Assembly: GCA_044892525.1 (NCBI GenBank)
Contig: CM097886.1
Location: 183,136,312-183,200,311, forward strand
DNA length: 64,000 nucleotides
Reading direction: 5' to 3'
From: Schmidtea polychroa
Lineage: Eukaryota
Each line of letters starts with the position of its first letter. The stretch's first letter is position 1. Both the position numbers and the translations under genes were made by a program. This document shows, piece by piece, positions 1,350 to 26,935 of this stretch. Below the pieces are notes generated by a model that saw only the letters and a list, made by a program, of their open reading frames with translations, searched no databases and was not told the origin of the DNA.

Positions 1350-2133
1350 AAGAAATAGTTGATGCTTAGGATAAATTAAGGACCCTTGGTTATAGAGGAA
1401 ACCAAATTTATTCTAAAGGTTTTCAATGGGCATCCATTTATTCAATTTGATTATGGCAACATCAGTTCATGAAATTTGAATGATTTGTTGTTTAAATGAT
1501 ATTATAATATTATGATCATTTTATCATTTTATCGTATTATGCTCATAATATTAATTATCACAAGAGGTCAAAGGACACCTCGAGATTACCTTTGGCAGTT
1601 CATTCAAACAAATTGTAAGATGATGTCATCATTGAATTATTTATATAAATAATTGACATATAAATTGTCCATTGTTAATAAGATATTACCAATTATGAAG
1701 GGCACCCCTGAATCTGGCAATAATCAATAATTAGCTAGAAATTGTACTGAAACAATCAATCGGTTCCTTAAATAAATATTTACAATTCTTATTCAATAAA
1801 CAAAATTATTAAATTCATAATTTTATAATATTCAATATTAAATATATAATAAAAATAATTATTTTTAGCTTTGTTTATTAAAACAAAATAATGAAAGAAT
1901 TTGTGCAATAATAAATTGGTAACCATGGCAACACAATCCATGCAATAAAACAAATTATTTATTATGCAATAACTTAATCAAAAATATATAATAGCGATTC
2001 CAAACATTTTTTGTCTTCGGTACCCTTTGATTAGGCCTTCATTCTTTTTAACAAAATATAATCAATAATATATTCAGCACAAATTATCAATAAAATATAA
2101 TCAATTGTGAAAGTCAGTGAAAAATTCAAAAAA

Positions 2134-5100
2134 TTAATTGAAAAACATTTTAGTCCTGGTGACGATGCCAGCCTTACAGAAGGGGCATTCAAATAACTCC
2201 ATGGAGCAAACATTACATGTCAAATGGCCACATTGGAATACAATTTCCACATTATTACCTGAGCAAATTTGGCACATCTAAATTGCAATAAATCAATACA
2301 AATTCATCATATAATCTTACTGGTATTTCCTTATCATGTTCATTTCCTTCATTATCAGGTCTGGCAGTGTTTCTGTGACATTTCTCGATCTCCTCCTTAG
2401 CAACAATGTCTGTGCACGCATCAATTATCCGCTGGCCACGTGACGTCCTCTTATAAATGTCACCGCCCAATGAAATTATCATTTTAATAGCTGAGATTAA
2501 TTTCCTTTTAGAATTTGCCTAGAAATCGATCAATGCGATAAATCAATAATCAATCAATACATTATTGGCAATCGATATTTTCTCCAATAATTGTGTCAGT
2601 GCACATTTGCCGCTTTCATCCTCACCATCGAATTCCTTTGATTCAGTGATCAATGCGTTCACCAGTTCCATTTCTCCCATTTCAATTGCAATTTGGAGAG
2701 GAATTTGATTCCTTATGTTTCGCAACATGACAAATTTCCCTTGATTTACCGAATCCAATAATTTCCATGCAAATTCCATCTTCCTTTCTTGCAATATAAA
2801 TGTGAATAAATTTTCACCGTTTCCAAATGTTCTCGGTGCCGATATTTCCGTTTGTATCAAATGGTCAAATAGCTCGATATCATCACTATATACAGCTTTG
2901 TAAAGGAGATTCTCTATAACCGACTGCTGCAATATGGAACTAGATTTATTGAATAGTAATCTTATTAGGTTAGCTCCACAAATCTCGCATGATTGGAAGG
3001 TATCCTTAGATATAGCTGACCGCAAAAAATTGTCAGGCAAAAGCTCAATCAATGCTTTTGCATATGAGAACCACTGATTTAGGAAAGCCGTTTGAAAATC
3101 ATTTGAAGTGAAATTTGTCAATCTCGGCTGATTGGACACGAGTGCAAGCATTAATCTGATAAATTGATTTATTAATATATTTCAATAAATTCTACTTTTC
3201 ACTTCCAATATTCGATGCCAATTGGAAAACAGTGATCCCATTGGTTGATTTGACATTGGCATCTGCTCCGTGTGCAATCAATATATTTGTGATATCGATT
3301 AATTTATTCAAGTTCTAAAATTGATATTTACAAGCCAATCAAAATATATCATTACATCATCATTGATATCAATTGGTGGCTCGACAAGCATCTCAAACAA
3401 TGGAGTGCTTCTCAAATTGTTAACACTGTCAACCTGTGCTCCAGCATTGAGTAGTGAACTGCACATATTTGGTTTCAGGCATTTCACCGCGAGATGCAGC
3501 AGTGAATTGTTGTCACCATCATGAGCATTCGAACTACTTAAATCGAGTCGTTCGAGAAAACACGGAAAAAGAATTCCATGAAATTTCATTGACAATGTTA
3601 ACGCGTTTTCATAGCAAGTCAAAGAAATTATTGATTGTGCAAATGGAATAACTGAAAATAATGAAATTCATTAATATTAATTGAATCATGTGTCTTTTAT
3701 GGCTCATTACACATCCCATTCATTTACTGCTTTAAAAAAATTGTTAAATTTAAGTTATGCAAAGTGATTTGATCAGTTATTATTAATTTATAATAATAAT
3801 TAAATATAAAAAAATGGGAAAATATTTTTAATTCCAGAATTTAAATTTAAACAAAATAAGTATAACATTAAGAAATGAAAATATTATTTACATTATAAAA
3901 AATCCAATAAATACACGAAAGTAAAAATCTTAAACATTGTGAAACATTGCAAATTCATTCAATTTTTTAAATAGGTCAACTTAAAAATTTATAGATTTTT
4001 CGATTTTCAAGGTTTTAACGAAAGTTCAATATTAATATTGATTACTTTGATTCTCCCGGTAATTTTATGGAATCGACACCAGCGTAATCTGAAACACAGC
4101 TTATGACATTTTATATTTTTGAATGGCAACTAGTGTTTCCAAATTACAATTCTATATTAAATGCGTTTATTCATTGCAACGCTAAAAATCAACACACAGG
4201 TAAGTTTTTATGTTTATATAATATACACGTATTTTTTTTATTTTTACATTATGGATGAGTTTATTCAATGCATCGGGTTTTGTGACAATTTTCTGTGATT
4301 TTCTGTGTATAAAGTTTGTGATTGAATTGAATATTTATGCGCGTTCATTTGATTAATTTATTGTGGGTAATGATTCCAATGGCTGTCTGTCCACAATTAT
4401 ATTTATTAAACCCGATATTATTCTAGCTTTTGTTTTACTATATTGAAATTTAGAATTAAACTTTTTGTAACAATTAATTTATCAAAAATTAAAATTTTAT
4501 TTTTCAGTTTTTGCTATATTTTTACATTTTTATTGGTTAATAAGAATTTGCAATTTTAATTTCAAGCTTTTACAGCAATTCCTGATAAATCTCTTTTTAA
4601 TACTTTTTCAAAATTTAAACTTCTTTGAATAAGCTAAATTATATTTAATTGTTTTATTGAACAATCATGAGTTATTTTCTGGTTTCCTTATAATGATTTG
4701 TGTCTTCCTGGAAATGGTCTCATAGAAATCTGGATTCAACCAGATAAAGATTTTTTCAAGCTGCCATCATAATTATTGTAAGCTTTTTCAATTTGTTTTT
4801 CATTTGTTATTATTGTTATAAATTATTGAATATATGTTTAGGAATTGTGATGGAAGCCTTTATGATACGCTCGTGTATGTGTACTATTTATTGCATGGAT
4901 ACATCTATTTGACCTACTTTTTTAATAACTTTAAATATACATTCCAGCAGAAGACACAAGCCGTTATGATGATGCGAGTCTATGACCTAGATAATATTTG
5001 AGTTAACCTACATAATATATAAGGCCAAAACAGCCTGTCATGATGGAAGCATATCTACTACTTATAGCAGCCTTTATTCATTGGCAACAGGTGTAATCAT

Positions 5101-8100
5101 TGCAGATCCTGATCCTGAACCAATTAAAATATGGATCGCGTCTGTGTGCGCGTTGATTATTTGTTGGGATTGCTTGGTGAGTGCGCATACAGACACGAGG
5201 CAATGTTTGTGTGTTGGTGCTGACTATTTATTATTTGTGGGTTCTGGAAGGACATTATTATTGGTTGTTTGGATGAACTAATTGGATCGCTTTTGAATAT
5301 TGATATTTTGTTTGGTTCATAAAACTTGCTAATGGTTAGGGCTAATAAATCAGGAATGTGCAAAGGTGGATTTGCCGGAGGTGATGCTTCATGAGCTGTG
5401 GTGCTCTCAATTGCTGGGCGCATTCTAGACATGGAGGTTTGACAGATTATTTGATGGCAATACGAACAGGACGATATTACAGGTTTATAACCACAGCGCA
5501 AAGGAGAATTTGTTCGAGATATTAAAGAACAAATGTGTTTCATTGCTCTTGTTGTTGAGCAAGCAATGCAGGCTACTGCTTTATCATCGCTTCCTGATGA
5601 GTTATGAAATACCAGATGATCAATTTATAACCATTGGAAATGAAATATTGAGATGTCCAGAAGCTTTGTTACATCCATCGTTCTTGTGAATGGATATTGT
5701 TGGTATTCAGGAGGCAACTTATGACAGCATTACATTTTCTGCAGGACTAATAAGATATGATTTGATCCTTCCGTAATGCTTCTAGATCAGGGGTGCCCAC
5801 TAATTTTTCTAGGAGCTACATTCACATCCAAAATGTGTATGCGATCTACTTTTTTAATACTTACATAATATTTACCTAAAATGCAATAAATTCATCACAA
5901 TAAAACAAATATATGTCAAAAGATGGAAAATTAAAGTATATAACTATTTATTATAAAAAAATGTAATATAGGAAATCAAATTTAATGAAAATTATTTTTA
6001 TATAGAACTTTTCGATGTTGATGCTCTACATTGGGTTGAATCCACTAGATTTTTGTAGTTTGGGATATAAGTGCTGATTTGATCCTTCCGTAATGCTTCT
6101 AGATGTTCCCGTGGCATTGTAACCAATGACAACAAATCAAACATTTCATTTGGCACTCAAAATAATTATTTCACAGAAATTATTTCTATTTTCTTTAACA
6201 AATTAATTAAAAGTTTTAGTTTGATAAAGTTTCACATCAATACAAGTATTAATATCGAAATAATAAAAGCAGATCGATTGCATATTAATTTAAATTAAAT
6301 CAATTAATTAATTAATCAATTAAATAATAAATAATTTACCATTTTCATTTCCGGAATATCGATTAATATTCTGTAAATAATAGAAATATAAAATTCAAAT
6401 CAAATAAATTGTGACATTTCCTCACCTCAACAGATCTCATAACATCGGCACCCCGGTTCACCAGTTGAGCACAAACATTTATCATCCCTCGAATAACTGC
6501 ACAGTGTAGGCCAGTCAACCCCATCTATATCTCACATAATTATTCAATCAATAATCAACAAATCTCACAAATCCAGCATGATCAATATCAATTGATCGAT
6601 CTATCAAATATTCACAATTGTCCTCCAATCCACTCGCAATCGCCTCATGCAATGGAGTTTGAAAATACTAAATAATGCCAATATATCAATATCAATATTG
6701 AATACTCTATTGAATTACTTTGTTTTGTGTATTGGTATCGATCTCAAATTGCTGCAATACATTGGTGCATTTCCTATGATGCAGCGAATGGGCCAAGGCC
6801 AACGCAGTCCCCATTGTCTACAAATATATTGATTTGATCATTTCAATAAACACATACTTCATTATTTGCATTGATATCTACAATGTCCTGATTATCTAGT
6901 ATAAATTTGGTCATATCGGCATCATTATCAGATATTGCTGTGTGTAATATGGTGAAATTGACCTTGATAATAAATAAAATTAATTATTGATTTTGCATTA
7001 TTCTGATGCACCTTTTGTCGTGATTCCATCAGAATCATTCGTTCTTGTATTTCTTCTTGTATTTCCACGAATCCTTTTTCCTTTGCTTTGTCAATGGCCT
7101 TGATCCATAACTGAATGATGAAATCAATGCTGATTTAATCAATTTCATCTCAAATTAGTTAATAATAATAATAATAATAACAATAATAACAATAATAACA
7201 TAAAACAGGTAAATGATAAGGTAAGCATTTGCTGCAAAATCTTTATTAAGTGAGAAAATTATTTATATAAAATAATTCAATTCGATCTTTCATAATTTTG
7301 CTTCAATGTTGAAATGCTTGCATGATTTCTTTTTAAAATTCATTTCTGATTTTTATTTGTTGAAAATTGATTAATTAAAATTACTGAAATGTAAAGCATA
7401 AAATATTTACGTGTTGACATATTTGAAAATATGTCCTACCAGTCAACTCAGGAAATTATTCACTATAAAATAGCGCTTAAAAGATTTCAAATATCTCAAC
7501 TGGTTCCACTGTAACTGATGTAAGCGCTTAGGAACACTAATCCCCTAGCCATGGGATATATTAGTCGCTATCATATTATTAATATATTATTATCATATCA
7601 GACTATTATCATATTATTAATTTTGATCCCAGAAGTTATTTGTCGGAAACATTTTTAAAAACCTGTTTGTATGTATCCAATAGTAACAAATTATTACTAT
7701 TATTATTATTAGAACTTATTTTAAAAATTTTACCACAGATTTCCATTGACATTATATTTATTTAAAAGCTTGACTATGAATCAGTAAATATATCGATATA
7801 ATTGATATTCACGAATTTTCGACACCGCCTTTTTCAATTGAATTATTATTATTAATATGATTTGACATAATGAAATAACAAAATTCAAAAATGTATTTTA
7901 TCACAATTTTTAATTATTTAAACAAAATTAATATTTTGGTAAATGGTTTTGTGTGATTAATGCTTTTCTAATCACAACAATTCACTCCTCCTAATTTGAT
8001 TGCTCTGCTGGCTATAGACGATCAACTGATAAATTCTCTAATACATAGCTTGAAATATTTTGGCTGCTTTTCTAATAGACGAAACGGACCATTATATGGA

Positions 8101-11100
8101 GCTTCTAATGATTTCCATACATCTTTTCTCATGTACACGAATTCACAATCCTTAATATATTTATTGATCGTCATACAATCTTGCAATGGTCTTTCGATTA
8201 TTCTGAAGCTCTCAATAATTTCTTTAAATTGATATGGAGAAGCTTCTATTTATGAATTAAAAATAATTCCTGGTACAGCAAGATCACATTCAAATGCTTT
8301 TTGTGTCGGAAAATAACCTGCTGAATCCCGACTGTTCCTTATCGTTAACAGTACCTGAGGTAAAACGTCAAACTTTTAATTTACTTTTATTCATTTTATT
8401 AATTTATTATTAATTTTATCCATTGAAGACATTTCTTGAGATTTTAGTGTCTGATGGAATTCTGCAACTTTAAAATTGGCTTGGGAATGATAAGCGCATG
8501 TTTGATTTGTATTTATTCCAAGAAAGTTGAACATATACTGGAATAAAGAGTTTGTAAATTGATCTGTTACAATTTCAGATGGGATTTCATATCGGGAAAT
8601 CCCCACTTCAATTAGTGATTTTGCCACAGTTTCTGAATCTATATATTTAATGGCCAATACCTCAGGGTAATATGTTTGTCTATCGATCATTGGTAGTAGA
8701 TAGGACTTCTCGTTATTTGCTAGGAAGATTTGCAATTCTGCTTTGATATGACGATATACTTTTGATTTTAAGCAGGAATCGCGTTGCTGACACAACATCT
8801 GGACATCCTTTGTCATCTTGTGTCATGTATATGAACTCAACATCAATATCTTGGCCATTCGTATTTCTGGATGAGCGACATATTTGGGTATATAGACAGT
8901 ACTGTGCGAATTAGTGTGAATATGAAATAATTTACATGTTTTATCATCTAGTTATACGACCATGTCAAAATTAGCTCCAGTTTAGTTTTACTGTTCTTAT
9001 ATTTGTTGTGTAATAACGTATTGGAGTTTACAGACGTGTTGTTATAGATAATTTAGTAAATACTATTGTGCTTCCTTTAATTTTTTACTAAGACTATCCA
9101 AACTATTCTAATCTTTGTTTCTTTCTTATTTTAAAAGATGAATGTTTCTCCCAAGAAGAGCACAAAAATTGTTACCTTAAGTGAACACATCAATGTATCA
9201 AAGAGATATTGCAAAGGAGTGTGGTGCGAGTTTAGGAGCTGTAATCAACATTTTAAAACAAAAGAAGGAAGTTGAGACGGTTTAGGCGAATAGAAAAGGA
9301 AAATGTGGAAGGAAGAGGAAGACAATAATAGATGAATTTATAATAGGAGTAAGTAAATTGAATTCTAGAGAAAATAACCAGCAACTTCAGAAAGGCTTAG
9401 CACATGGTGGAGTTATTATTCCCGATTCCACAGCTTGAAAATGGCTTATCAAAGTTAGAACAAGTCTAATAGACCTCAAAAAACAATTATTGAGCTTTGT
9501 TTAAAAAAGTGACAACGAAAACTTTACGACAGCTCATATCAATAGAATCATTAAACGCGATAAGGACGATGTTTTGATCTGGTTATTGTATAAAGGTACC
9601 GGATCCCTTGTGTCGGTTGAAGGCATGATAAAGGCGCTTTGTTTAATTTCTAGAAATATCTTAGCTGTTTTTAAAGATTATAATTTAAAACGGCATTATT
9701 TTCAAAAATATGTTTCCATGTATGATGATTACGACGGAATGTATCGTAAAGATAAAGTAGCTGGACTTAAGGAAAATCTGTTTTCTCAACAAACATTTTT
9801 CAAGAGAATTGTCACTCAAAATTATTCTGTCGTAAAAGTCAGTTATGTGGTAACAAATATAATTGCAAAGAAGTCGAAACCCTTCACAGATCGCAAATTT
9901 ATTAAGTAATGTTTGGAAAGTCTAGCTGACATTATTTGTCCAGATAAAAAATCAGACATATCAAAAATCAGTTTATCGCAACTAACTATAGGAAGACGAA
10001 TTGAAGATATTCAGGACACCTTTGTCCATTGTGAGGCGTTTTGTAATTTGTATTTAAATAATGGTATGATGTTGTGCTTGTTTGATTGTATGCTGAAATC
10101 CTTACTTATACATTGATTATTATTTTTTAGAAACTCCTCAAACAAATTAACGTTATAATTTGTTTTAATAATATTTGTGTTTTTATAATAAACGTGTTTT
10201 AGTTATGGATTCTATTAATACCCGTAGCTCTGTGGCTAATATGGCGACCACGATTGCAAATTTTATCAAGCCACCAGAAACATATGACATGGATTCAGAC
10301 GCATAAATCAGTGGCTGCATTCGGTGACGAGGATCCAGAGGCTGATTTTGAGTACCCAAATGGGAATGCTCCACCACACGAGGAGGTGATCGGAGCAATA
10401 AATTAAAGGTAATTAATGATATGAGTAAGGGTTGTATGATTTTGAATGATTGTGATAGGTTGAATGATTGTGATAGTTTGAATGATAACTGTTGTGATGG
10501 TGTTTTTGATTATAGAAATTATATTAATATATACATTAATAAATTTTGTATGGATGAAGTTTTTAAAGACCCACCCCTAACTTCTAATGAACTAAATGTT
10601 CTTAATCGTGATAAACGGAATGATATAATAGTATACGATAAAATGCAGGGAAGGCCCAGTGTTACCGTAATGATTAATAATATAAAATTAGTATGCCTAT
10701 TAGATACTGGAGCTAAAATAAGTGTGATTGATTATAATATTTTTAAAAAACTTGGAAATTTGAATATGACTACAAGTAATCTGAAAATAAGATGTGCGAA
10801 TGATAGCCCGATTGAAATTTGCGGTAAAACTTTATTAAATGTAAAAGTTGATAAAATTTCTGATATTAAAAAAGTAGAATTCGTTGTAGCCAAAGATATA
10901 AACCCAAAGTTAATAGGAGGTATAGATTTTCTCGAAAGAAACCGTACAGACGAAATAAATACAATTATGGAAAATTCATTTAATAACCACATAAGTGAAG
11001 ATAAGATTATAAATAATTTAATTTCCACGTTTGACGGTATTTTTATGAAACATAAATGGGATGTTGGAAAACCCGAACTATTAAAGCATGAAATACTTAC

Positions 11101-14100
11101 TAAAGGTAGTCCGATTGTAATAAACCCAAGACGACAACCTATACATTTAATAGAAAAAATTGAAGAAAATATTCAAGAAATGTTGAAATATGGCATTATA
11201 TCAGAATGTACATCTCCTTGGAATTCTCCATTAGTATGTGTTAAAAAGAAAAACAGTAGTGATATAAGAATATGCTTGGACTACCGTGCTTTAAATAATA
11301 TAACCGAAAGACCGATTTTTCCCATTCCAAATACTGATGAATTATTAGAAATTCTTGACGGAGCAAAGTTTTTCTCGACAATTGATTTAGGCAATGCTTA
11401 TTATCAAGTAGAACTCGATGATGCATCAAAATTGAAAACAGCATTTTCGACAAAAAGCAAGCAATATTACTTTAACAGAATGCCATTTGGAATAGCAGCC
11501 GCACCAGCAACATTTCAAAGACTTCTCGTTTCCGCCAATGGAACATTAGTAAAAAGACTACACACATCAAACGAATCCATCATTTCATCATCAGAACTTT
11601 TCTTCAGTGCAGCAATGAATGAAGCAAATTCAAAGCTATCCTTACATTCGAACTCAGACGCCATTAAAGGTTTTAATAACCCATCCAAAAATTTGGCAAT
11701 TTTATATTGAGCGGTTCCTACCATCGATAACACTGGTCTCATAGGCATACCTGCTTTATGTACTTTTGGAAGACCATAAAACTGGTTTATATACAACGCC
11801 TGATAGTTTTTGTGAGTTTAAATATAAAAGGAATATGGTGAGAGGATTAGTGTTTCGTGCTTGGTCACTATCCTCCACGTTTGCTAATTCAGTAAAAAGT
11901 ATTGATGTATTAGTTGAGTTGTTACTTAAAAATGGCTACTCTAAATCTTCTCTTGAGAAGATGACAAAAGTGACCGTGGATAAGTTAATGTTTAAATCTG
12001 ATAACGTTGGTATGCGTACGTCTGAATCTGAGGTACCTATTGATCCTGAGGAAAGTACTAAGTTAAATTCGGAAAGTGACAAGAATCGATCCAATCGCAT
12101 GGAGCAGAAATATGTGTTAGTATTGCCTTATTCGGAGGGTTTCAGAGAATTTAAACATAAAATTCTCAAATATGTAGACAAGGATCAATTCAGGATTGTT
12201 TCCACTTCTTGCAAAGTTAGCAGTATGTTTACTAGTAAATGTCCAACGCCAATTGGTTTGTGTTCTGAGCTTGTGTATCAATTTTCATGTAATGGGTGTA
12301 ATGCCATATACATTGGAGAGACTGCCCGTCATCTCTGCACCCGAGTTCTTGAACACTGTCGACCAAAAGGATTGACTAATATTAGTAATCATGTTAGGAA
12401 ATGTGTCAGTAAAAAAATAGGTATCTCTGATTTTAAAATTATTTCAAAAGGTTTAAGTAATTATTGGGAACGAGTAACTTGTGAGGCATTGTTGATTAGA
12501 TATTTAAATCCAAAAATAAATGATCTAGTTGCCCGTTCCACGGAGATTTTGAATGTGTTTAAGTAATTGAAGGATGAAGGTTTGGAGTCGTGTTTGTGGT
12601 ATAATTATGTTTGTGTTTTGTAAATTATGTAATTTTTTTTAAATTTGTTAACTTTATGTTGAATGTTAAATGTTATTAAATTAAAATTTAATTTTAAAAT
12701 AATATGTATGTGGGGCTATGTAAAATATGGTTTGGTTTTTTAAAATATTGTTTTTGAAATATTTTTTTTTAAATTTTTGATACAGTTTGGAGATGATTAT
12801 TATTAGTTAATTTGTTTAGATATTGCATATTTTATGTCTTATTATTGATTATCCAGATTGCGGCCTGACGAAGATTGTTGTACAATTGAAATATATCGCG
12901 TTTATGTTGAATTTATTGAGTTGGCATTTCTGTATTATTAAATCATTGCCACGTTTTTTTGATTATTAATAATAATAATAATATTAATTATTATTATTAT
13001 AACAATCACTAAATGATGGCATCGATTTAAATATAAATAAAACGACAATCCAATATTAATAACTTTTTTTTAAAATTAAGAAATAATGAAATAACAAGTG
13101 ATTATAAAGTAAAATTATTTATTGGTATATTTTGGATAGAAAAATAGAAATCGTTAATGAATTGCATAATTATATCTTTCTTGAATGTTGCTTTTTAAAT
13201 TGCGTCTTTCAGAAGCTAGAGATATTCGTTTGAATGAGAATGCAAATGCCTTTATTGCTCTATTGATGCTAAATGTGCTAATGTTCATTGGAATTATTTC
13301 ATAAACTTGCGTTCGAATTGACTCTGATGTTATTGAAACATCCTCAAGAAAAAACCTCACGCAAATTCTTTTTCAGGCGTTAACAGTTTTCCTTCGTGGC
13401 TTTTCGTTGATTCAATCCTTCCACCTTTTTGTATACACGGATAACACTCGCAACTGTTTGGTAATTTATATTTAATTAGTTTGAAATTTCTTTTATGCTT
13501 TAGCTGGGATATATTTATCGTAAACAAATAGCTCATCGAATCTGACAGCTTCATACTTACAGAGATTTACATTCACCCTTAATATTTTGATTTTGACATC
13601 ATTATTGAAAAAAGAGAAATAATAATAATAATAATAATAATTTTAAATCAATAAATAATAATAAATTAATAAAATAACTTGTCAATATATTATATAATTC
13701 AGATAAATCAATAATTATTCCATTTCCACAAAGTTTATGAAATATTTCAACATAAAATCGATCGCCTTCACTCAAATGCGAAATTTAAAAAATTTAACAA
13801 ATCGATCTGACGCTTCATAAAATATTTATTTAAAATTCATAAATAAACAAATCAGATATTTTCTCACCGATTTGTCGTAAACCGTTTTCTTCATGATCGA
13901 TTCGACAAACAGATGATGGCCTTGATTGACAGCCAATTCCAGAAACGACAACTCGCCCTAATCAATATCAATACAAATACAAATAATTATTTGACCTTAC
14001 GATTCTGCGCTGCCCATTGATAGTGTGAGCAGAATTGAATCTCTTGAACCCGCTCATGTGCCCGTGAGTGATGCAGCGATAAAGGACGCACTGAAATTAT

Positions 14101-17100
14101 TTATTTATTGATTTATTCAAATAATCAGCTCACTTCTTTCATTAAATTTGCATTTTTGTCCATTTGTGCTGTCAATAATTCCATTGCATTATTGATTTCC
14201 TATTGATGAGAATATTAATTATATCAATCAATAAATCAATCAAACTTTATCATCAATTGGTTTGTCAAGGATTAATTTAATAATCTTATCAGCATTGGAC
14301 TTGATTGCTCCCTCCAGCACAGCCAATCCAGTCTAAATATCAATTATTAACCAATCAGAATATCACAAATTTACATAAATATTCTGCATTATGAAATCAG
14401 AAGATTTGAACAAATCACCAAATGCGATTGCATCATCCCGTTCAATGGCAGCAAATAACTGAAATATTTATTCAAATTGATTCATAATGAAATAATTCAC
14501 ACTTTCTCCGCATGAGTCAATAATTCCACGCAATCAGCACATTTATATTGCTTTGCTATATCCAGCGGACTCTTTCCATCCTAAATAAATAATCCAATCA
14601 AAATATCCGAATCAGCGAATCATTTAAACATCCCCATTCACAAACAGATCATTAAAGCCCTGTGGCAATAAATGGTACTAAAACCGACACTGCAAAACCG
14701 CGTGCAAAGTGTAAATACCCGTGAGATATCATGCTAAAGAAATAGTTGAGAAATGGCAAATCTGATCCGAATTACTAGCCAATGGAATTGCCGATTTGCA
14801 TTTATTAATGAATTCTGTCAGTGGAGATCTCCAAATAAATGAAGTCGACATTTCAATATTGCTTCATTCATTTCAGACATTTACTGCATAAAATCCTCCA
14901 GTGCAAGGAATAAATTGCCAGAAAAGCTGCTAGAAAAGCTTTTCATTCATTTTGAGGCGTTGCAGAAAATATTTCAAATAGCAAAAATTATTTCTGTTGA
15001 GAAGTGAAAAAGTGAATTAAAAATAAAATCGATAGCAAGGAAATAGCCAATTAAAATGCTGAATTTAATGTGAGAAGTAGAGAAATGCAAATTTACAGGA
15101 AATATTTTACATACCAAAACGTAAACAATATTTGTGATGAACATCTGGCCTGCACAATCAATATTCAGTGGCCATTGTTCTGCTTGCATTGCAATTATTG
15201 GCCTGATCTGTTTCACGGTAATTTTGATACAAATGCTATGTAAATATATAATTATTATTTTTAGCTTTGTTTTTATCATTATCATTAAATTATTTGTGAA
15301 ATGTCCGAAATATTGGCAAATACAAATGAGAAACCCGATGAGTATTCTGGCAATGAAAGCGATGAACATTATGACAGTGAATATATCATACAATAGTGAC
15401 AGCGACACTCCTGACAATGAAGGAGCTTCTTCGTCCTCAGAAAGCGAGAGTGAATATGAGAAATTTACAAAATAAAGGTGCGAATGTTACAGTTGATGAG
15501 CAACTATTTCCAACCAAGCTCGATGCTTTATAAATCATGACTTTGTTCTCACAATTTAGAAAGGTAAACCGAACTAAAGTTATTTTTAAACATAAATTCT
15601 CTTTCATTTTATAATAATATATCTGACCGAATGGCAAGGAAATGTAGCGTCAAATCTGGGCCTAGAATATGGCCGCTTCAAGTACCTTTCAATATGCTAG
15701 GCTTAGCTGCAATGAATGCCTCGATACCATATAAGAGAACCGCAGCAGATAACATATCAATATGCTAGGCATAGCTGCAATGAATGCCTCGATACCATAT
15801 AAGGGAACAGCAGCAGATAACATATCAATATGCTAGGCCTAGCTGCAATGAATGCCTCGATACCATATAAGGGAACTGCAGCAGATAACATATCAATATG
15901 CTAGGCCTAGCTGCAATGAATGCCTCGATACCATATAAGGGAACAGCAGCAGATAACATATCAATATGCTAGGCCTAGCTGCAATGAATGCCTCGATACC
16001 ATATAAGGGAACAGCAGCAGATAACATATCAATATGCTAGGCCTAGCTGCAATGAATGTCTCGATACCATACAAGGGAACTGCAGCAGATAACATATCAA
16101 TATGCTAGGCCTAGCTGCAATGAATGCCTCGATACCATACAAGGGAACTGCAGCAGATAACATATCAATATGCTAGGCATAGCTGCAATGAATGCCTCGA
16201 TACCATACAAGGGAACTGCAGCAGATAACATATCAATATGCTAGGCATAGCTGCAATGAATGCCTCGATACCATATAAGGGAATAGCAGCAGATAACATA
16301 TCAATATGCTAGGCCTAGCTGCAATGAATGCCTCGATACCATATAAGGGAACAGCAGCAGATAACATATCAATATGCTAGGCATAGCAGCAATGAATGCC
16401 TCGATACCATATAAGGGAACAGCAGCAGATAACATATCAATATGCTAGGCTTAGCTGCAATGAATGCCTCGATACCATATAAGGGAACTGCAGCAGATAA
16501 CATATCAATATGCTAGGCCTAGCTGCAATGAATGCCTCGATACCATATAAGGGAACTGCAGCAGATAACATATGCTGCTCAATACAAAATCAGAAAGCGT
16601 GTTACCAGTAAATATATCGACACCTTCAAATAGCCTCCATCTCACGCGTAAATGGCGTATGATTGGATATTGCAATAATAATAACATCACAAATAATTAT
16701 TTTCATTGCTTTTAATGAATTATTTCCAGTTTAATAATGAATATTATATTATAATTATATTTATTTATTATTTGATAATATGGCAGCGCATGTAAGGCTA
16801 CTTTATAAAGGTTATTTGCTAATCAATCGCTTCTGCTTGGGGAGCAAGATATTATATTTGATGGCCCATTGAAGCCATTATGACTGTTGCTGGTAGCAAT
16901 TGCTATGATTGTTATTGGCCGTTCTAGTGTTAGTTATCTAAATTGATAAATTATTGGCTGTTGGCAATGCAATTTGCTGCGGCGGCTGGTAAAGGGCAAG
17001 ATCACATGATAATGCTGTCACATCGATATTGGCCATATCGGGCCTGCAGGGAGCTATTGCATTCTCACCCCGCTAACGGTTCCATTGACACCTCATTCTG

Positions 17101-17690
17101 TGCTCTCTTGCCTCTCACTAGAGCTCTCTGAGGCAGTTCTCAATGGCATTTCATTCATTGCTCCTTATGCAATCCATTTCACATATTCAATTAACCAGAT
17201 CGCAACTCACCAGATTTAATTGATATTTCATTATATAAAATGTTAATGTTTACTTTTGTTCGGCAATCGATTCGGCATTTCCGCTGCAGCAATAATTTCA
17301 ATATTTCTGAATGCCCATGGCAGCTAGCATAATGAATCGCTCTCCATCCCTGCAATTTATCAATTGATTATTTATTTGCAATGATTATTTACCCATTTGT
17401 CCTCAGATTCCACATCGCAGTTGCGGTCAAGCAATAACCTGGCAATATCAACAAATCCATAACGGCAAGCAAAGTGAATGGGCAACCGGCCCTGAAATCA
17501 GAAACATTAACCCAATAATTCACATTGCCAATCAATCTCACATAATCATCAACAATCCTATGCACAAATTCTCCCCTCAAATTATCCCTGACGCCCTCCA
17601 CATTTCCCCTCATCAAGTGCTCCTTGAAACATTGAAAATCCCTGCAATGCAAATTATCCAATGCAAATCATAATCAATATTTCACCCCAT
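2134..17690 (-). CDS. Ankyrin-repeat + C-terminal RING-finger protein (probable E3 ubiquitin ligase), copy A, 21 exons, ~892 aa
   Basis: Hand-spliced exons: 17686-17690, 17542-17641, 17393-17491, 17254-17349, 14503-14580, 14375-14458, 14246-14332, 14134-14199, 14001-14090, 13868-13957, 7012-7110, 6858-6962, 6719-6817, 6569-6667, 6426-6524, 6340-6370, 3356-3651, 3196-3314, 2561-3155, 2321-2518, 2134-2277. All introns GT-AG, phases compatible, total 2679 nt with no internal stop. Ankyrin motifs include [58 protein letters not shown] and [15 protein letters not shown]. Last exon: [37 protein letters not shown]. The start ATG is tentative (further 5' exons possible). Confidence 0.88.
5325..6140 (+). 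pseudogene. Actin pseudogene with large internal deletion, inside intron 16 and antisense to the host gene (copy A)
   Basis: Reads [23 protein letters not shown], then directly [38 protein letters not shown], then [43 protein letters not shown]. These match canonical actin segments; stops and frameshifts present; interrupted by hAT sequence at 5788. Confidence 0.9.
5788..6075 (-). mobile_element. 288-bp single-end remnant of the Buster-like hAT that is full length in copy B
   Basis: Starts caggggtgcccactaattt and matches B from 35481 to ~35770; flanked by a 30-bp direct repeat (5758-5787 / 6075-6104). Confidence 0.9.
7990..8880 (-). mobile_element. Gypsy LTR-retrotransposon integrase remnant (copy A)
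   Basis: ORF 8391-8816 has rve-like [40 protein letters not shown]; the downstream minus frame reads [26 protein letters not shown] (GPY/F motif). Confidence 0.8.
8897..9625 (+). mobile_element. Tc1-like transposon remnant (copy A)
   Basis: Terminal cagtactgtgc at 8897; decayed N-terminus [51 protein letters not shown]; DDE-domain fragment [12 protein letters not shown]. Confidence 0.7.
9626..10030 (+). mobile_element. hAT (GTF2IRD2/Buster-like) transposase N-terminal fragment (copy A)
   Basis: [19 protein letters not shown]..., [15 protein letters not shown] and [18 protein letters not shown] motifs. Confidence 0.8.
10241..11522 (+). mobile_element. Gypsy gag(deleted)-protease-RT fragment (copy A)
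   Basis: Protease LLDTGA; RT motifs [50 protein letters not shown]. Most of gag is deleted relative to B; truncated by the Penelope-like insert. Confidence 0.92.
11523..12910 (+). mobile_element. Penelope-like retroelement with inverted 5' RT fragment (copy A)
   Basis: Minus strand 11523-~11780: [28 protein letters not shown] (PLE RT). Plus strand ~11780-12566: RT thumb plus GIY-YIG nuclease [28 protein letters not shown]. Confidence 0.9.
12861..12910 (+). ncRNA. Hammerhead-ribozyme-like motif in the PLE 3' region (copy A)
   Basis: CTGACGA (12865-12871), stem attgt/acaat, GAAA (12888-12891), stem tata/tatg with a G-U pair, then a GTT triplet. Stem I is weak. Confidence 0.5.
13154..13560 (-). 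mobile_element. IS630/Tc1-like transposase remnant (copy A)
   Basis: [34 protein letters not shown], typical of the HTH-linker region of Tc1/IS630-type transposases; fragmented. Confidence 0.6.
15301..16710 (+). mobile_element. piggyBac (PGBD4-like) transposase remnant with internal deletions (copy A)
   Basis: Acidic N-terminus from 15301; [14 protein letters not shown] at 15477; [30 protein letters not shown] at 15631; Cys-domain relic [12 protein letters not shown] after the array. No TIR/TTAA ends found. Confidence 0.8.
15691..16573 (+). repeat. 68-bp minisatellite, 13 units (copy A)
   Basis: Unit aatatgctaggcctagctgcaatgaatgcctcgataccatataagggaactgcagcagataacatatc; unit starts at 15691+68n up to 16507. 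Confidence 0.97.
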
Positions 17691-19179: not shown

Positions 19180-22100
19180 GTCGCTTAGGGGTGTGTCATT
19201 TTATTGCTAAAATGTTTTAGGGGTATTATATGTAAGGAATTGACTCCTTTCTAAACGCCTTAATGACTATTGTACTTTAGACCATCTGTGTACCCATGTC
19301 AGAGGTGTACGCAATGATTGAAAATCAATGACCAGGTGAGCTCTATTGCTAAAATTACTCCTTATTGCATTTTCTTTTCAGATTCTGGAATCCGATAAAA
19401 AGTCTTACGTCATTATTCAGTATCTGTTCTATCGCTAGATCATTGTCATGTTTTCATTTAACTGTGGTCTTCATTGCCCATTTCAATAATCTATTTTATG
19501 TATCCTTATGATTCTATAGCCCTTCAAATGTTTTATGGTCTGTTCTAATAACTACCTCTGTTCTATATATATGGCCTAAATTATTTCTATTGTTGAATAT
19601 CTTAATTGGGCACCTTTTAACGTTTTACTTGCATTAGCTATTACATAAACTTTACATTTTTCTTCTTCTTGTATTAAGACTGCCCCTACGGCTTTACCGC
19701 TGGCGTCAGTCATAACTATAAATTGTTTTTTAAAGTCTGGGTATCTTAATATTGGTGCAGTTACTAATTTTTCGTTTATTGATCAATGTTTTTGATGTTT
19801 TGCTGTCCATTTCTTTTGTGGTTTATTGATTTTATCGTTTATACTTTGTACTATGAACACATTTTTACTTTCTCCCTTGGTTTTTATTCCTTTAGTTAAT
19901 TCTATCATCGGTGCTTCTATTTTTGCATACTCTTGTATAAATTTACGATAATACCTTGTTAAACCTAAAAATCCTTGCACTTGTAATGTTTTTGGGACTG
20001 GAAACTTTTTTACAGCTTCAATTTTATCTGGGTTTAGTGTTATGCCCTCCACACTAACAATATGTTCCAAATATAACGCTGAGGGCTCCGCCCATTTACA
20101 TTTAGTTGATTTAATCTTTATCTTTGTCTTTCTTAATCGCTGTAATACGTTTGTAATGTCTTTTAAATGTTCCTCAAATGTTTTTGATGATATTAGTATG
20201 TCGTCCATGTAAACTGCGCAATGATGTACACCTACTAATATTGTATTCATTAAACGCTGGAAGGTTGATGGTGCATTGGTTAACCCAAAAGGTAATCTTT
20301 ATTTGCATAAATGGCTGAAAAATATTTAGAGTCTCTTAATTTATCAAATTGTTCTTGTGCTTTTGGAAATGGGTATGAGTCTTTTACTGTTACGTCATTT
20401 AGTTTATGATAGTCAATGCACATTCTTATTTCTCCATCTTTTTTTCTAACTGGTACTATTGGTAGTGCCCATTGTGAAAAACTTTGTTTAATTACACCTG
20501 CCTGTTTTAATTCTTTAATTTTTCGTTTTATTTCCTCCTTCAATTTATAAGGTACTCATTAGGGTCTTTGTTTTATGGGTCTATCATTATCTGTATCTAT
20601 CACATGTCTAATGATGTCTGTATCTCCTAAATTAAATTCATGTTTAGCAAAAACATCGTTACATTCATCAATTAAGGTTTCTAATTGTGATTGTTGATTT
20701 TCATTTAAATATTTATTATCAATTTTTACTTTATCGTAGAATTTTATGTTATTTGGTTTAACCAGTTCGACAACGTTTTCACTCGTATTCTCCGTTATTC
20801 ACATCTCACTTATTTCAATAATTTGTTCTGCTTTTCCTTTAAATAGCTTTCATAGTTTTGTATCTTTATGTATTTTTATATTATTATTTTCATAATTTGC
20901 AAATCGTATCAGGATTATTCCGTTTTTTGGAGTTACACACTCGTCTATCAGCATACATTGTGATTTTTTGTGATTGCCGTAACAAGCTCAAAAATAAAAG
21001 TGTCCTCACTTTTGATATTAACTTTTACAGGAACTATATGACTACATTTGTATTCTAGCTCTAAACCTTCTAAAACGATTACCTCTGAAAATTTTGCGTT
21101 ACGGTGGTTTGCTTTCCTTTTAACTGTACTATTTGTTAAATCTATCACACAATTTTCTAGTTTATTAAGTATGTCCATTCCAAGAACACATATGCTTTTG
21201 CACTCCTCAGCGACTTTAATATATATGATTTATTGTTTGACTTGCCAAATGGGCAGTTAGCTCAATGTTTTCTTTTAATGGAATATCGTGTGCTGACAAT
21301 GATACCACTCTTTCTCTTGTCGTTACAATATTTTTCTTTTGATTCTCTGTTAATTAACCCTCTCTTATCAATGATGCTGCTGCTCCTGTATCAACTTGAG
21401 CATATATGCTTATAATATCTATTGTTATTTGAAGTAGTGGTCTTGCTTCATTTGCCGATCCCCATAGGTCATTTATGCAAAGTTCCAAACTATAGCACCC
21501 GTATATATTTTCTGGGTATACCATGACAACCTTTGCTTAGTTTTGGCATCTTAATTTCAATATTATTTTCCATTTCTTTTAATAAATCTCTTTGATTATC
21601 GTATAGGCCTTTGCTTGGCTGTTGTTCTGATTCTTCCGGGTTTCTTCATCTTTTTCTATGATCATTATTTGCTGCTAGTCTTTTCTTTGTCTTTTTATTA
21701 ATCGGATCTATTTGTCATGTTTTGCTGTTATTAAATATTTCGCTATGAATGGACAAAAACATGCTATTAGCTTGTACGAATTTCCAAACACTTGTCTGAG
21801 CTACTTTAATGACACTAATGATGGGCAAATCATTTTCAATAGAGTCACTGTATAGTATATTCATAATATTGCTGAGAACATGTTTCCGAGGATTGCGAAA
21901 TATCCCAATATAATATATAATATTTGGTATAATACTCAGTATACCACCTTTTTTTAAATGTTCCTCTACCTGAATAGTTTCCATATATACTTCATAATCA
22001 TTGTAATTGCTCCGTTTATGACCTAATTGGTTTTGACTTCCTTAGTTATCGTTCTTAATTAGTTATTTCTGTTGACCATTTTAGTAATTCCCCTTCTTCT

Positions 22101-24123: not shown

Positions 24124-26935
24124 TAGGGAATCCATTTTTTAACAAAAACCGAATTCCGGAATTTTCGGATTTACGTAAGATGAAATTCAGAATTCCGGAA
24201 TTATTCTGGAATTGAAAAATAAAAAGTCAAGAGCAAAAAAAATGTTAACCAGCATAAATTTATTTCAAAGTAAACAAAGAAAATTTTTATTTTTGTATTA
24301 ATATTAATAAAAAAAACATAAACAAAACAAATTCAATATTTAAAAAAATATAATATAAAAATAAAAATTACTATATAAATAAAAATTTATGTTTGCTTTT
24401 TGAAGAAGCTTCTCAGCATACACAAATTGTCCAATGTAGTATCATTAAGTCTTGACCTAATTTTTGTTGAAAATGCTCCAGCGGCGGAAAAGGCTCTCTC
24501 TGCTTCAACACTTGTTGGGGGAATACACAAAAGGTTTTGTAAATTATTTCCAAAAATGGTCCACGAAATACACCTTCGTCCCAAAATTTTAATTCATTTC
24601 GAATAGCAAATTGAATTGATATTTTTTTTTTAAGTTTTTGTAGTCGGCTGTAAAAGTGACTGCTGGATTTTTTGCTGCAACAATTTCTGTAAGGAGGGCT
24701 GCGTTTCACTTTCAAAAGATTCGTTGGGTTCAAATACTAAATCAGAATCAGACTCGGAATCCGTTGAATCAACTTCAGCAGTAATTTCATCATTAAGTCG
24801 CCGGGCCAGTAATAGAATAATTTTATTTATTTCTGTTTTCGAGTGACCGGAAATGCTCTTGTGAATTTTTGTTTTGCCACCATTATGCAAATATTGTAGC
24901 ACATCAGATAAAATAGTTCTTCTCCGATTGAACTGGAGTTCTATCTCTTTTTTCAATTCAAGGGCAAATTCGTCATTCTCACTAAAATTTTGTAACATAA
25001 ACGTAAATGTTGCATCCGCAGAAATTAAATTAGCATCTGCACGGCATAATGCGTCTACGGTTAATTTTACTGGCATCAAATTTTTAGATATTCGTGATAC
25101 CGAATCCCATTCTGATTCATATAAAATTATGTCCGTTTCAATGTCAATTAATGCTTTTTTAATGAACTTTTCAAAATATTAAAACGCTCTAACATAGACA
25201 ACATGCTATTGCATCTAGTTTTCGAATCTAACACAAGCTGTAATTCTTTTTTATGATCTTGCTTCACGTATTTTTGAAGCACTTCTTTTTTCAAAGAAGA
25301 ACGACGAAAGGTTTTAACAATTTTCCGAACTTTTGTGATTAATGCTCGTAGTTGAAAGTTTTCAGTTGTTTCCATAACATCAGTTTCAATTCCCATATCT
25401 ACCCGCATTCCATTGTCATCATCCTCATCATCAGTAAGATTTTCTTCATCTACCTCAAAGTTCCGTTCATTTTCATTATTGTCCTGCTCTACTTCGTTTT
25501 CTGTTGCATTATCTACTAAATCCAACGTTTGCTTTTTATAGAGTACATTACCAATTGCAATTTGAATTGCATGAGCAAAACATAAAATTTGTTCGCAGGA
25601 TAACAATCTACTAACTTTTTGCATCATGGAGGCACTATCTCTAACAATGCACAAAATATCATTTCCAATATTTAATTGGCATGATTCAAGCTTTTTTTCC
25701 AGCAATTTTATACAATCTTTAGACGCAAATCGGCCATTTTTACGAGCCAATCCCAAATTCCAGACCCGATCTCCTGATCCATGCACGTTAATATTTCGAG
25801 AAGAAGTCCATTCGTCAAGTGTCAGATTGAAACGTACGTTTCTGTTTTTTTCAGAAATAATTCCCGAAATTATCGACTGCCGAATTTTTTTGCTGTAATC
25901 CATCACGACTTTTTGTATACTGGTAGGTGATTTCGGAATATCACAAAATCCCCGCGTTCATAAACATTTTCTTAAATCGTCTGAACTACAAAATATGCGA
26001 AACGGTAATCCGTCTGAAGCTACCATTCGAGATATTACTGCGGCAAAACTTTCGTCTACTTTTGAAATATAAAAATCTTTAATCGTTTTGATTTTTGTAG
26101 CTAAATCGCCGGTATTCGCACCAGCAGCATCCGTATCATCAATTTTTCGTTTATTTAAAATCTTGTTATGTTTAGTCCGCAAATGGGTGCGTATGGGTGT
26201 TGTACACCCACCCAATATCTTTAAAGCCTTCCTACATTGTGTACATTTCGCCACTTGAGTTTTTGTCCCTCGTAAAAAATGAGTCCACACCAAATTTGAA
26301 GTACTCTCTTTGGAGACATCTATAAAAATTTTGTCTTGCTTATCCGCATTCCTTGGGATTAAACATATGTACACAAGAAATATATGAAATTTTGAAACTA
26401 ATAAAACCTACCTATATCAAATGCTACCGTGAAGAATTGAACTTGAATGGTTAATTAAATATTTATATTATTAAAATAAAATGAAATGATTTGCTGATTA
26501 GTAAATTTAATATTAAATATTAGACAAGAGGACGTTATTAAAATGATAATGATTTACTGTTTATTTATACTAAATTTACTATTACACTTAAATATAACAT
26601 ATAACACAACACAACAAAGGAAAAAACATTTCTATTATGATATAATTTCACAAAAAATTTAAATGTCAAAACGAATAACATTATTTTTATTTCTCATGGC
26701 AAACTGTTTGTATTTTTTTTTAAAAATAAATCGTTACAATACAAGGTAATAATATAGTTTTTTTGTATAATTTTTTGTCAGTCGCTGGAATTCCGTGTAA
26801 TTTGTTAAAAACAAAAAAATATTTAAATGCGAATAATCGGGAATTCGATTTATTTCAATTCCGGAATTTCGAATATAAAAAACAAGGCGGAATTTCGGAA
26901 TTCCGAAATTTCGAAATCCGGATTTCGATTCCCTA
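24124..26935 (-). mobile_element. Ac/ZBED-like hAT transposon, 2812 bp, frameshifted transposase (copy A)
   Basis: TIR tagggaatc (24124) / gattcccta (26927-26935); subterminal GGAATTCC-type repeats at both ends; BED finger VWTHF..AKCTQCRK..TTPIRTHLRTKH; catalytic TLDEWTS; dimerization LLCIPPTSVEAERAFSAAG; degenerate flanks gctgtgat / ctggtgac. Confidence 0.92.

Follow-up and report, generated by a model that had tools for sequence, protein, structure and literature searches.

The question raised by positions 2134–17690 of the 64,000-nt stretch of Schmidtea polychroa DNA analysed here (hereafter, the window) is whether a series of ankyrin-like and RING-like fragments on its minus strand belong to a single spliced gene. 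The locus is AT-rich (~30% G+C), and a bacterial-style list of its minus-strand open reading frames (ORFs) contains only fragments, among them a 47-aa RING-like ORF (2134–2277), a 202-aa ORF (2543–3151) and ankyrin-like pieces up to position 17661. A first-pass annotation, made from the sequence alone, had joined such fragments by removing 17 introns of 40–55 nt and three large ones, giving a frame of 21 exons and 2679 nt, and had described the gene as invisible to the ORF track; this holds in that the track contains only fragments of it, but the 202-aa ORF and several others are listed. We conclude, with a probability of roughly 85%, that the locus is one spliced 21-exon gene coding for an ankyrin-RING protein of 892 aa, which belongs to a tandemly amplified family and is a predicted ubiquitin ligase. 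Three independent lines of evidence support the gene model: the splice junctions agree with homologous proteins, RNA-like contigs contain the corresponding joints, and the exon structure is conserved among paralogs.

Outside evidence of this kind is needed, because an open frame obtained by removing GT-AG introns is no evidence by itself. A dynamic program extending from the ATG at 17690, in which any GT..AG intron could be removed, produced an open frame of 9456 nt with 88 "exons" that ran through a 68-bp satellite and transposon remains; unconstrained threading was thus rejected as a gene-finding method and retained as a null model. The exon cores were placed by tblastn comparison of two spliced homologs, P0003 (774 aa) and P0044 (614 aa), against the window. 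Both proteins, which came out of an exhaustive profile search that had the 198-aa exon 19 as its query, contain Ank domains and a C-terminal zf-C3HC4_3 domain (Pfam), and both run colinear with all four exon clusters (A to D) of the window. All the in-frame GT..AG options between adjacent cores were listed and those matching the junction peptide of the homolog were kept; for each core pair, a single option combined consensus-like splice sites with that peptide.

This independent, homology-guided reconstruction on the minus strand, from 17690 to 2134, returned figures identical to those of the first-pass annotation: 21 exons totalling 2679 nt including the stop codon, 17 small introns (44, 50, 43, 44, 42, 46, 43, 43, 49, 40, 51, 44, 55, 41, 40, 42, and 43 nt) and three large ones. 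Each of the 21 exons is open, and every one of the 20 introns has canonical GT-AG ends (40 splice-site dinucleotides). Exons 3–15 start in phase 0 throughout and are 66–105 nt long, so that several of them correspond to exactly one ankyrin repeat each. The peptides across the joints agree with those of the homologs, as seen for IVDDY|GRLPIH (IVDKHGKFPIH in the homolog), YDKS|LWIKAID (YDKSLWIKAID) and RSVE|NINRYSGN (RSVEIINQYSGKEN). Likewise, the continuity of ankyrin motifs across kilobase-scale introns, previously proposed from CRTK|DGKSPLDIA, is borne out by the match of CRTK|DGKSPLD to CKTKSGMSPLD in P0044 and by the ankyrin register, which is maintained over the 2673-nt intron, exon 4 being one codon short and exon 5 beginning one position early. 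Alternative donors for intron 2 (giving introns of 32 or 62 nt) were rejected, as the 50-nt option agrees with P0044.

Among 5.8 billion database proteins there are only four relatives, each an unnamed Metaclust entry, which fits the earlier proposal of a lineage-specific gene. When the pre-RING and RING region of P0003 was used for a word-indexed search, nothing beyond P0003 and P0044 was retrieved, and a search of the ESM Atlas with exon 19 retrieved generic ankyrin clusters only. No locus in this S. polychroa genome is more than 70% identical to P0003, which therefore derives from another organism. P0013 (609 aa), also a database relative, is a chimera: after the C-terminal part of the family, in which the RING is truncated, the protein goes directly on to sequence that resembles a retrotransposon gag-protease. 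The suggested origin is a transposon that inserted into a member of the family in another organism, or read-through from such a member.

Four sequencing runs (X1, X2, X5, and X7) were aligned over positions 2110–7140. In X5 and X7 every bin was covered and the contigs passed straight through the introns, with none of the splice joints, and these runs therefore represent genomic DNA. Runs X1 and X2, from two other studies, showed depth on the exon clusters and almost none over 3790–6309, except for repeat-like bins. Their contigs contained CT..AC joints (GT..AG on the minus strand) for the introns at 2519–2560, 3315–3355, 3652–6339, 6371–6425, and 6963–7011, of which those at 2519–2560 and 3315–3355 and the joint across the 2688-nt intron (3651→6340, CT..AC on the plus strand) were found in both runs; variant joints or loose ends were consistent with the introns at 2278–2320 (an X1 joint 2277→2323 with two letters between), 6525–6568, 6668–6718, and 6818–6857. 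Additionally, an X1 contig runs 165 letters past position 7111, and the first 30 of these are exactly 13869–13898, the end of exon 10, indicating that the 6757-nt intron was also removed. As to the junction reads put forward in the first-pass annotation as a check, 10 of the 11 introns tested were shown or implied in X1 or X2 contigs, including those of 2688 and 6757 nt. Two further joints differ from the model. In an RNA-like contig with the joint 3649→6426, 33 different letters stand in the place of exon 16, most likely the form that this exon takes in a paralog. A non-canonical joint, 6667→7070, leads from exon 14 to exon 11, leaving out 402 nt, and may come from a paralog with fewer repeats, from exon skipping or from a contig chimera.

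Exon 19 gave 56 matches in its own genome, 34 of which spanned nearly the whole exon (194 or more of its 198 residues, 43–100% identity), and 32 of these 34 had no stop codon; the family comprises at least 34 loci. Seven of them form a same-strand array in contig C2 (183.07–183.27 Mb), 29–37 kb apart and with a period of ~32 kb, and further loci occur at 183.38–183.40 and 185–188 Mb of C2, as well as in C1, C3, and C4; the next family copy begins ~1.9 kb past the end of the window. We compared eight paralogs (35–95% identity), fetching 20 kb around each. In all eight the matches were colinear and on one strand, with the exon order kept as far as the fetched DNA reached: five of them, spanning the same 35–95% identity, contained clusters A-B-C-D, one contained B, C, and D, and two only D within the 20 kb. 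The large introns of the paralogs measure from ~0.1 to 11 kb, with 530–1400 nt for intron 4 and ~0.1–3 kb for intron 10. Since their positions are the same and their sizes variable, the kilobase-scale introns of the locus are conserved positions swollen by insertions, namely a protease-reverse transcriptase (RT) remnant and a satellite.

The paralogs also bear on the start of the gene. All five with cluster A retain the 5-nt first coding exon (ATG-RG|GT), and the ATG-RG followed by GT(A/G)A and an intron of ~44 nt is kept upstream of exon 2 at merely 35–45% identity, which supports this unusually short exon. An alternative start at the in-frame ATG of exon 2 (17613) was rejected, because this Met is lost in two paralogs that nonetheless keep ATG-RG|GT. 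The number of N-terminal ankyrin exons of the exon-3 type varies from two to five among paralogs. In a count of variability over 15 N-terminal repeats from ten gene copies (the eight paralogs and the two copies in the window), the most variable ankyrin positions were 5, 13, 26, 3, 14, 10, 30, and 2. Five of these eight (5, 13, 3, 14, and 2) are among the positions reportedly randomised in designed ankyrin binders (DARPins) by Binz and colleagues in 2003.

The gene is not a singleton even within the window, a point overlooked by the first-pass annotation. A second copy of the whole gene (copy B, 30633–52606) is 96–99% identical to the copy described above (copy A), introns included, and has all its splice sites intact. 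Copy B contains 23 exons, its two extra 99-nt N-terminal ankyrin exons having arisen by repetition, at ~51.6–52.1 kb, of a 142-nt unit composed of a 99-nt exon and a 43-nt intron. Over the shared 2679 nt, differences between the copies are unevenly distributed: 17 replacement and no silent differences in exons 3–7 vs. 10 replacement and 11 silent differences in exons 8–21 (Fisher, p = 3e-4). Under neutrality, the 17 of 17 replacements in exons 3–7 have p = 0.02; in exons 8–21 there is a deficit of replacements (p = 0.0013), which indicates purifying selection in this part. The differences at residues 67, 68, 78, and 79 fall in ankyrin positions 2, 3, 13, and 14. This pattern fits a binding surface that diversifies on a constrained ligase body.

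Several observations weigh against the reading of the locus as one expressed gene. The intron at 3156–3195 is the only one of those tested without a joint among those displayed. RNA support covers the introns up to 13867 and not the eight above this position (exons 1–10), that of 2673 nt among them. X1 and X2 are taken as RNA on account of their joints and of the depth that they lack in introns, the run label "RNA?" being a guess. Moreover, the contigs are not assignable to copy A, since seven copies are 97–100% identical in exon 19; at position 2158 the window has G, but A, the letter of copy B, is found in each of the four runs, whether DNA or RNA-like, while at position 2240 both letters occur, with the A-type variant in X1 and only the B-type in X2. 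Lastly, the clustered differences between copies A and B could have arisen by gene conversion among paralogs, and not by independent selected substitutions.

Because near-identical copies collapse in short-read contigs, expression is not attributable to one copy; the contigs indicate that the family is expressed, and the single A-type letter at 2240 in X1 hints at the transcription of copy A. It is nevertheless improbable that copy A is a silent or decaying recent duplicate, with an intact frame that reflects only its youth and RNA contigs that come from its near-identical neighbours. Such a duplicate would agree with the high identity to copy B, including the introns, and among the seven copies in exon 19, as well as with the letters at 2158 and, in X2, at 2240; it agrees poorly with 21 open exons and 40 canonical splice-site dinucleotides, with the A-type letter of the X1 contigs, and with the deficit of replacements in exons 8–21, which implies that at least one lineage has been constrained since the duplication. 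Since the reads bear on the introns up to 13867, and not on the small ones beyond it or on that of 2673 nt, there is some room for two or more transcription units, an ankyrin-only gene at 13.8–17.7 kb and an ankyrin-RING gene at 2.1–7.1 kb, the more so as the intronic transposon remains could bring promoters or terminators. We consider this division very improbable, given that exon 11, from 7110, is continued in an RNA contig by 165 letters that begin with 13869–13898 of exon 10, that P0044 unites the N-terminal repeats, the middle clusters and the RING in a single protein, and that the order is kept in paralogs whose same introns measure 0.1–1.4 kb, with the ankyrin register unbroken over the junctions.

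The product of the single spliced gene starts with a short N-terminal cap, continues as a nearly unbroken solenoid of about two dozen ankyrin-type repeats and ends in a single C3HC4 RING of the IAP/MIB-RING3 type. Pfam searches with the ORF pieces placed Ank or Ank_2 at 2.5–3.7, 6.4–6.7, 14.5, and 17.2–17.5 kb; by exon, matches were above cut-off in exons 3, 4, and 19 and weaker in exons 5, 14, 15, and 17, and homolog P0003 matched Ank_2 at 104 bits. Exon 21 matched zf-C3HC4_3 (PF13920) with 34.2 bits (cut-off, 27), and contains all eight zinc ligands (C2, C5, C16, H18, C21, C24, C31, and C34) in the cross-brace spacing C-X2-C...C-X-H-X2-C-X2-C...C-X2-C, in agreement with the C3HC4 terminus initially proposed; the two domains then expected from profile searches, Ank_2 and zf-C3HC4_3, are both above cut-off, in exons 19 and 21. 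Apart from Ank-type and RING models, none matched the exons or the full-length homologs. Modelled with AlphaFold2, P0003 had a predicted local distance difference test (pLDDT) of 80–95 over residues 340–715, equivalent to exons 17–20 here, and below 50, and thus unusable, for residues 1–340 and the RING, because the alignment is shallow. All the top Foldseek matches of this model were ankyrin solenoids: the MIB1 ankyrin region, DARPins, ankyrin-B/R, and the ARCs of tankyrase.

The nearest solved RINGs are those of BIRC7 (3.8e-7), XIAP (2e-6), and MIB1 RING3 (2.6e-6), with cIAP1/2 also within the range, up to 2.7e-5. The IAP RINGs are the best sequence matches of the planarian RING, with the same spacing and a C-terminal tail of the same length; the alignment ends within one residue of the IAP C-terminus, with an aromatic residue, here Phe, at −3 (KMFFN in the planarian protein vs. 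RTFLS and KIFMS). In IAPs, the C-terminal aromatic residue at −3 supports the activity of the RING dimer. Prediction of a RING homodimer with zinc scored 0.31, against a mark of 0.32, and counts neither for nor against a dimer. Unlike IAPs, the planarian protein has no BIR or CARD domain and its substrate-binding part is an ankyrin solenoid; identity as an IAP (BIRC) was ruled out, as there was no BIR match in any exon or homolog.

The organization of the protein resembles the C-terminal half of Mind bomb (MIB1/MIB2), in which an ankyrin block likewise precedes a zf-C3HC4_3-type RING that closes the protein; the structure aligned above is MIB1 RING3 (8v0d), and the ankyrin region of MIB1 (8v0e) was the first Foldseek match. 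Pfam scans of the exons and of P0003, P0044, and P0001 found no MIB/HERC2, ZZ, or BIR domains. The planarian protein also lacks REP domains and has one RING, whereas MIB1 has three and MIB2 fewer; its ankyrin solenoid is much longer and more divergent, and its genes are multi-copy and fast-changing, in contrast to the conserved, single-copy MIB gene of the Notch pathway. In the genome, MIB_HERC2 matches occur only at C3:12.77 Mb (two), C3:110.6 Mb, C2:5.96 Mb, and C1:45.1 Mb, that is, in other chromosomes or 177 Mb from this gene. The two exons of the first of these sites (G000:C3:12772577-12777491) are 4.7 kb apart on the plus strand and are likely the true Mind bomb gene of this genome.

The literature on planarians offers some points of contact. 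Around 20 transcripts of the RING catalogue of the sister species S. mediterranea have weak best human matches to MIB1/MIB2 (PMC8807557, supplement; undiscussed in the paper), and they may be relatives of this family. Together with the nearness of MIB1 RING3 and with the top Foldseek match, in which the MIB1 ankyrin region is tied with DARPins and ankyrins, these transcripts are what could be argued for a planarian orthologue of MIB1/MIB2 that acts on Notch ligands and whose N-terminal domains were missed. This identity is extremely improbable: MIB_HERC2 and ZZ are absent from every exon and homolog and MIB_HERC2 exons map elsewhere, the start codon is conserved directly ahead of the ankyrin cap, the protein has a single RING, and a family of 34 loci is not an orthologue. 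The first-pass annotation had likewise held, from the lack of these domains, that the gene is not Mind bomb proper. The ankyrin domain of a planarian nidovirus (PMC6211748) was also considered and set aside, being related to RHD-ankyrin host proteins and not to the ankyrin-RING family.

Plant XBAT/XB3 proteins share with the planarian protein a two-part logic, with N-terminal ankyrin repeats for binding and a RING for recruitment of the ubiquitin-conjugating enzyme (E2). XBATs have far fewer repeats, and the planarian RING reached 16.7 bits against the XB3/XBAT31 model (PF24921), with a cut-off of 50, which ruled out this identity; the likeness to proteins from a different kingdom is most likely due to convergent domain shuffling. 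Fast-evolving ligase-adaptor families have expanded in other lineages, such as the finTRIMs of fish and the F-box and MATH-BTB genes of nematodes and plants. These families and the TRAF-like genes, whose expansion in planarians has been described (PMC8807557), share with the family described here tandem amplification, a variable recognition surface on a conserved ligase part and lineage restriction. In the planarian family, the recognition module differs in being an ankyrin solenoid of exon-sized repeats, fused directly to the RING. Our literature searches found no description of a planarian ankyrin-RING family.

Table 1. Exons and large introns of the ankyrin-RING gene (copy A), with the evidence for each; positions are those of the window.
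Feature	Position	Strand	Evidence or remarks
Exon 1, coding part (ATGGG, start codon + 2 nt)	17686–17690	−	GT donor, then 44-nt intron (17642–17685); ATG-RG|GT(A/G)A kept in paralogs
Exon 2, N-terminal cap	17542–17641	−	Aligns with P0044 residues 41–72; junction peptide matches through the 50-nt intron
Exon 3, ankyrin repeat, 99 nt, phase 0	17393–17491	−	Pfam Ank, 30.9 bits
Exon 4, ankyrin repeat, 96 nt, donor of the 2673-nt intron	17254–17349	−	Pfam Ank, 28.6 bits; junction peptide as in P0044
Large intron 4, 2673 nt, with a 68-bp satellite array	14581–17253	−	Tandem Repeats Finder (TRF)
Exons 5–10, phase 0, divergent ankyrin-like helical repeats	14503–14580, 14375–14458, 14246–14332, 14134–14199, 14001–14090, 13868–13957	−	Junction peptides agree with P0044 or P0003
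Small introns between exons 5–10	within 13868–14580	−	44, 42, 46, 43, 43 nt
Large intron 10, 6757 nt, with transposon remains	7111–13867	−	Pfam; absent from RNA-like contigs by the exon 10–11 joint
Exons 11–16	7012–7110, 6858–6962, 6719–6817, 6569–6667, 6426–6524, 6340–6370	−	57–91% identity to P0003; RNA joints
Exons 11–15, phase 0, one repeat unit of ~33 residues apiece	6426–7110	−	Pfam Ank, E ≤ 0.001, on exons 14–15 only
Large intron 16, 2688 nt	3652–6339	−	Joint in X1 and X2; depth drop vs. DNA runs
Exon 17, 296 nt, ankyrin repeats, acceptor of the 2688-nt intron	3356–3651	−	RNA joint; Pfam Ank matches below cut-offs
Exon 18, 119 nt, ankyrin repeat	3196–3314	−	RNA joint 3315–3355 in X1 and X2
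Exon 19, 595 nt, 198 aa, family-specific divergent ankyrin region	2561–3155	−	Pfam Ank_2, 28.2 bits
Exon 20, 198 nt, last helical repeats and linker to RING	2321–2518	−	RNA joint 2519–2560; similar to P0003 and P0001
Exon 21, C3HC4 RING finger, tail ...TRTKMFFN and stop	2134–2277	−	zf-C3HC4_3, 34.2 bits

The insertions differ between introns and between copies. The 68-bp satellite of intron 4 occupies 15689–16573 in copy A (13 units, 97% matches) and 48380–50896 in copy B (~37 units), with a roughly threefold difference in length. Insertions make up most of the 6.8 kb of intron 10, where an ORF at 10421–11710, on the plus strand and thus antisense to the gene, codes for an aspartyl protease and an RT (Pfam gag-asp_proteas and RVT_1). 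Two other ORFs of this intron, 11766–12566 (plus strand) and 8391–8816 (minus strand), had no Pfam matches, and an assignment of the former as a Penelope-type GIY-YIG endonuclease, guessed from a motif, was dropped for this reason. In the spacer between copies A and B, the minus-strand ORFs 19783–20250 and 24413–26374 appear transposon-like by eye, with an RT-like piece and a BED-like CxxC...HxxxxH motif.

From its domains, we infer that the protein could act as a ubiquitin ligase in which the concave ankyrin surface would bind a target protein and the RING would recruit a ubiquitin-charged E2, probably as a RING dimer through the aromatic C-terminal tail, in the manner of IAPs; the bound target, or the ligase itself, would then be ubiquitinated. 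Ligase activity, dimerisation, choice of substrate and biological role are all predicted here from sequence. The selection of substrates by the ankyrin repeats, already put forward in the first-pass annotation, is a putative function in whose favour the substitution pattern between copies A and B argues. Neither the count of N-terminal ankyrin exons nor the residues of the binding surface are constant across the family, which suggests that there may be many target specificities.

The ankyrin-RING architecture was already known, and the new aspect is the amplified, modular and surface-variable family. There is a published annotation of 41,915 genes for the S. polychroa schPol2 assembly (PMC11410931), in which this gene is probably included; it would then be hidden from the ORF track only, and not new in itself. 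Genes of this kind are missed by ORF-based tracks. The family would also be a clean natural example of the evolution of repeat proteins by duplication of exon units.

A more far-reaching possibility, which is speculative and which we rate as rather unlikely, is that the family is a germline-encoded repertoire of recognition ligases, natural counterparts of the fusions of DARPins to ubiquitin ligases, that would tag for ubiquitination fast-evolving proteins of foreign or selfish origin, be they viral, microbial or derived from transposons. Such a repertoire would draw, just as tentatively, on hypervariable ankyrin surfaces and on numbers of repeat exons that change by duplication of an exon plus its intron. 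If true, planarians would have a type of innate immunity or genome defence that is undescribed in flatworms. Planarians are models for regeneration whose innate immunity is little known, and a tandem family of ligases with modular and rapidly changing binding surfaces would be a candidate recognition system.

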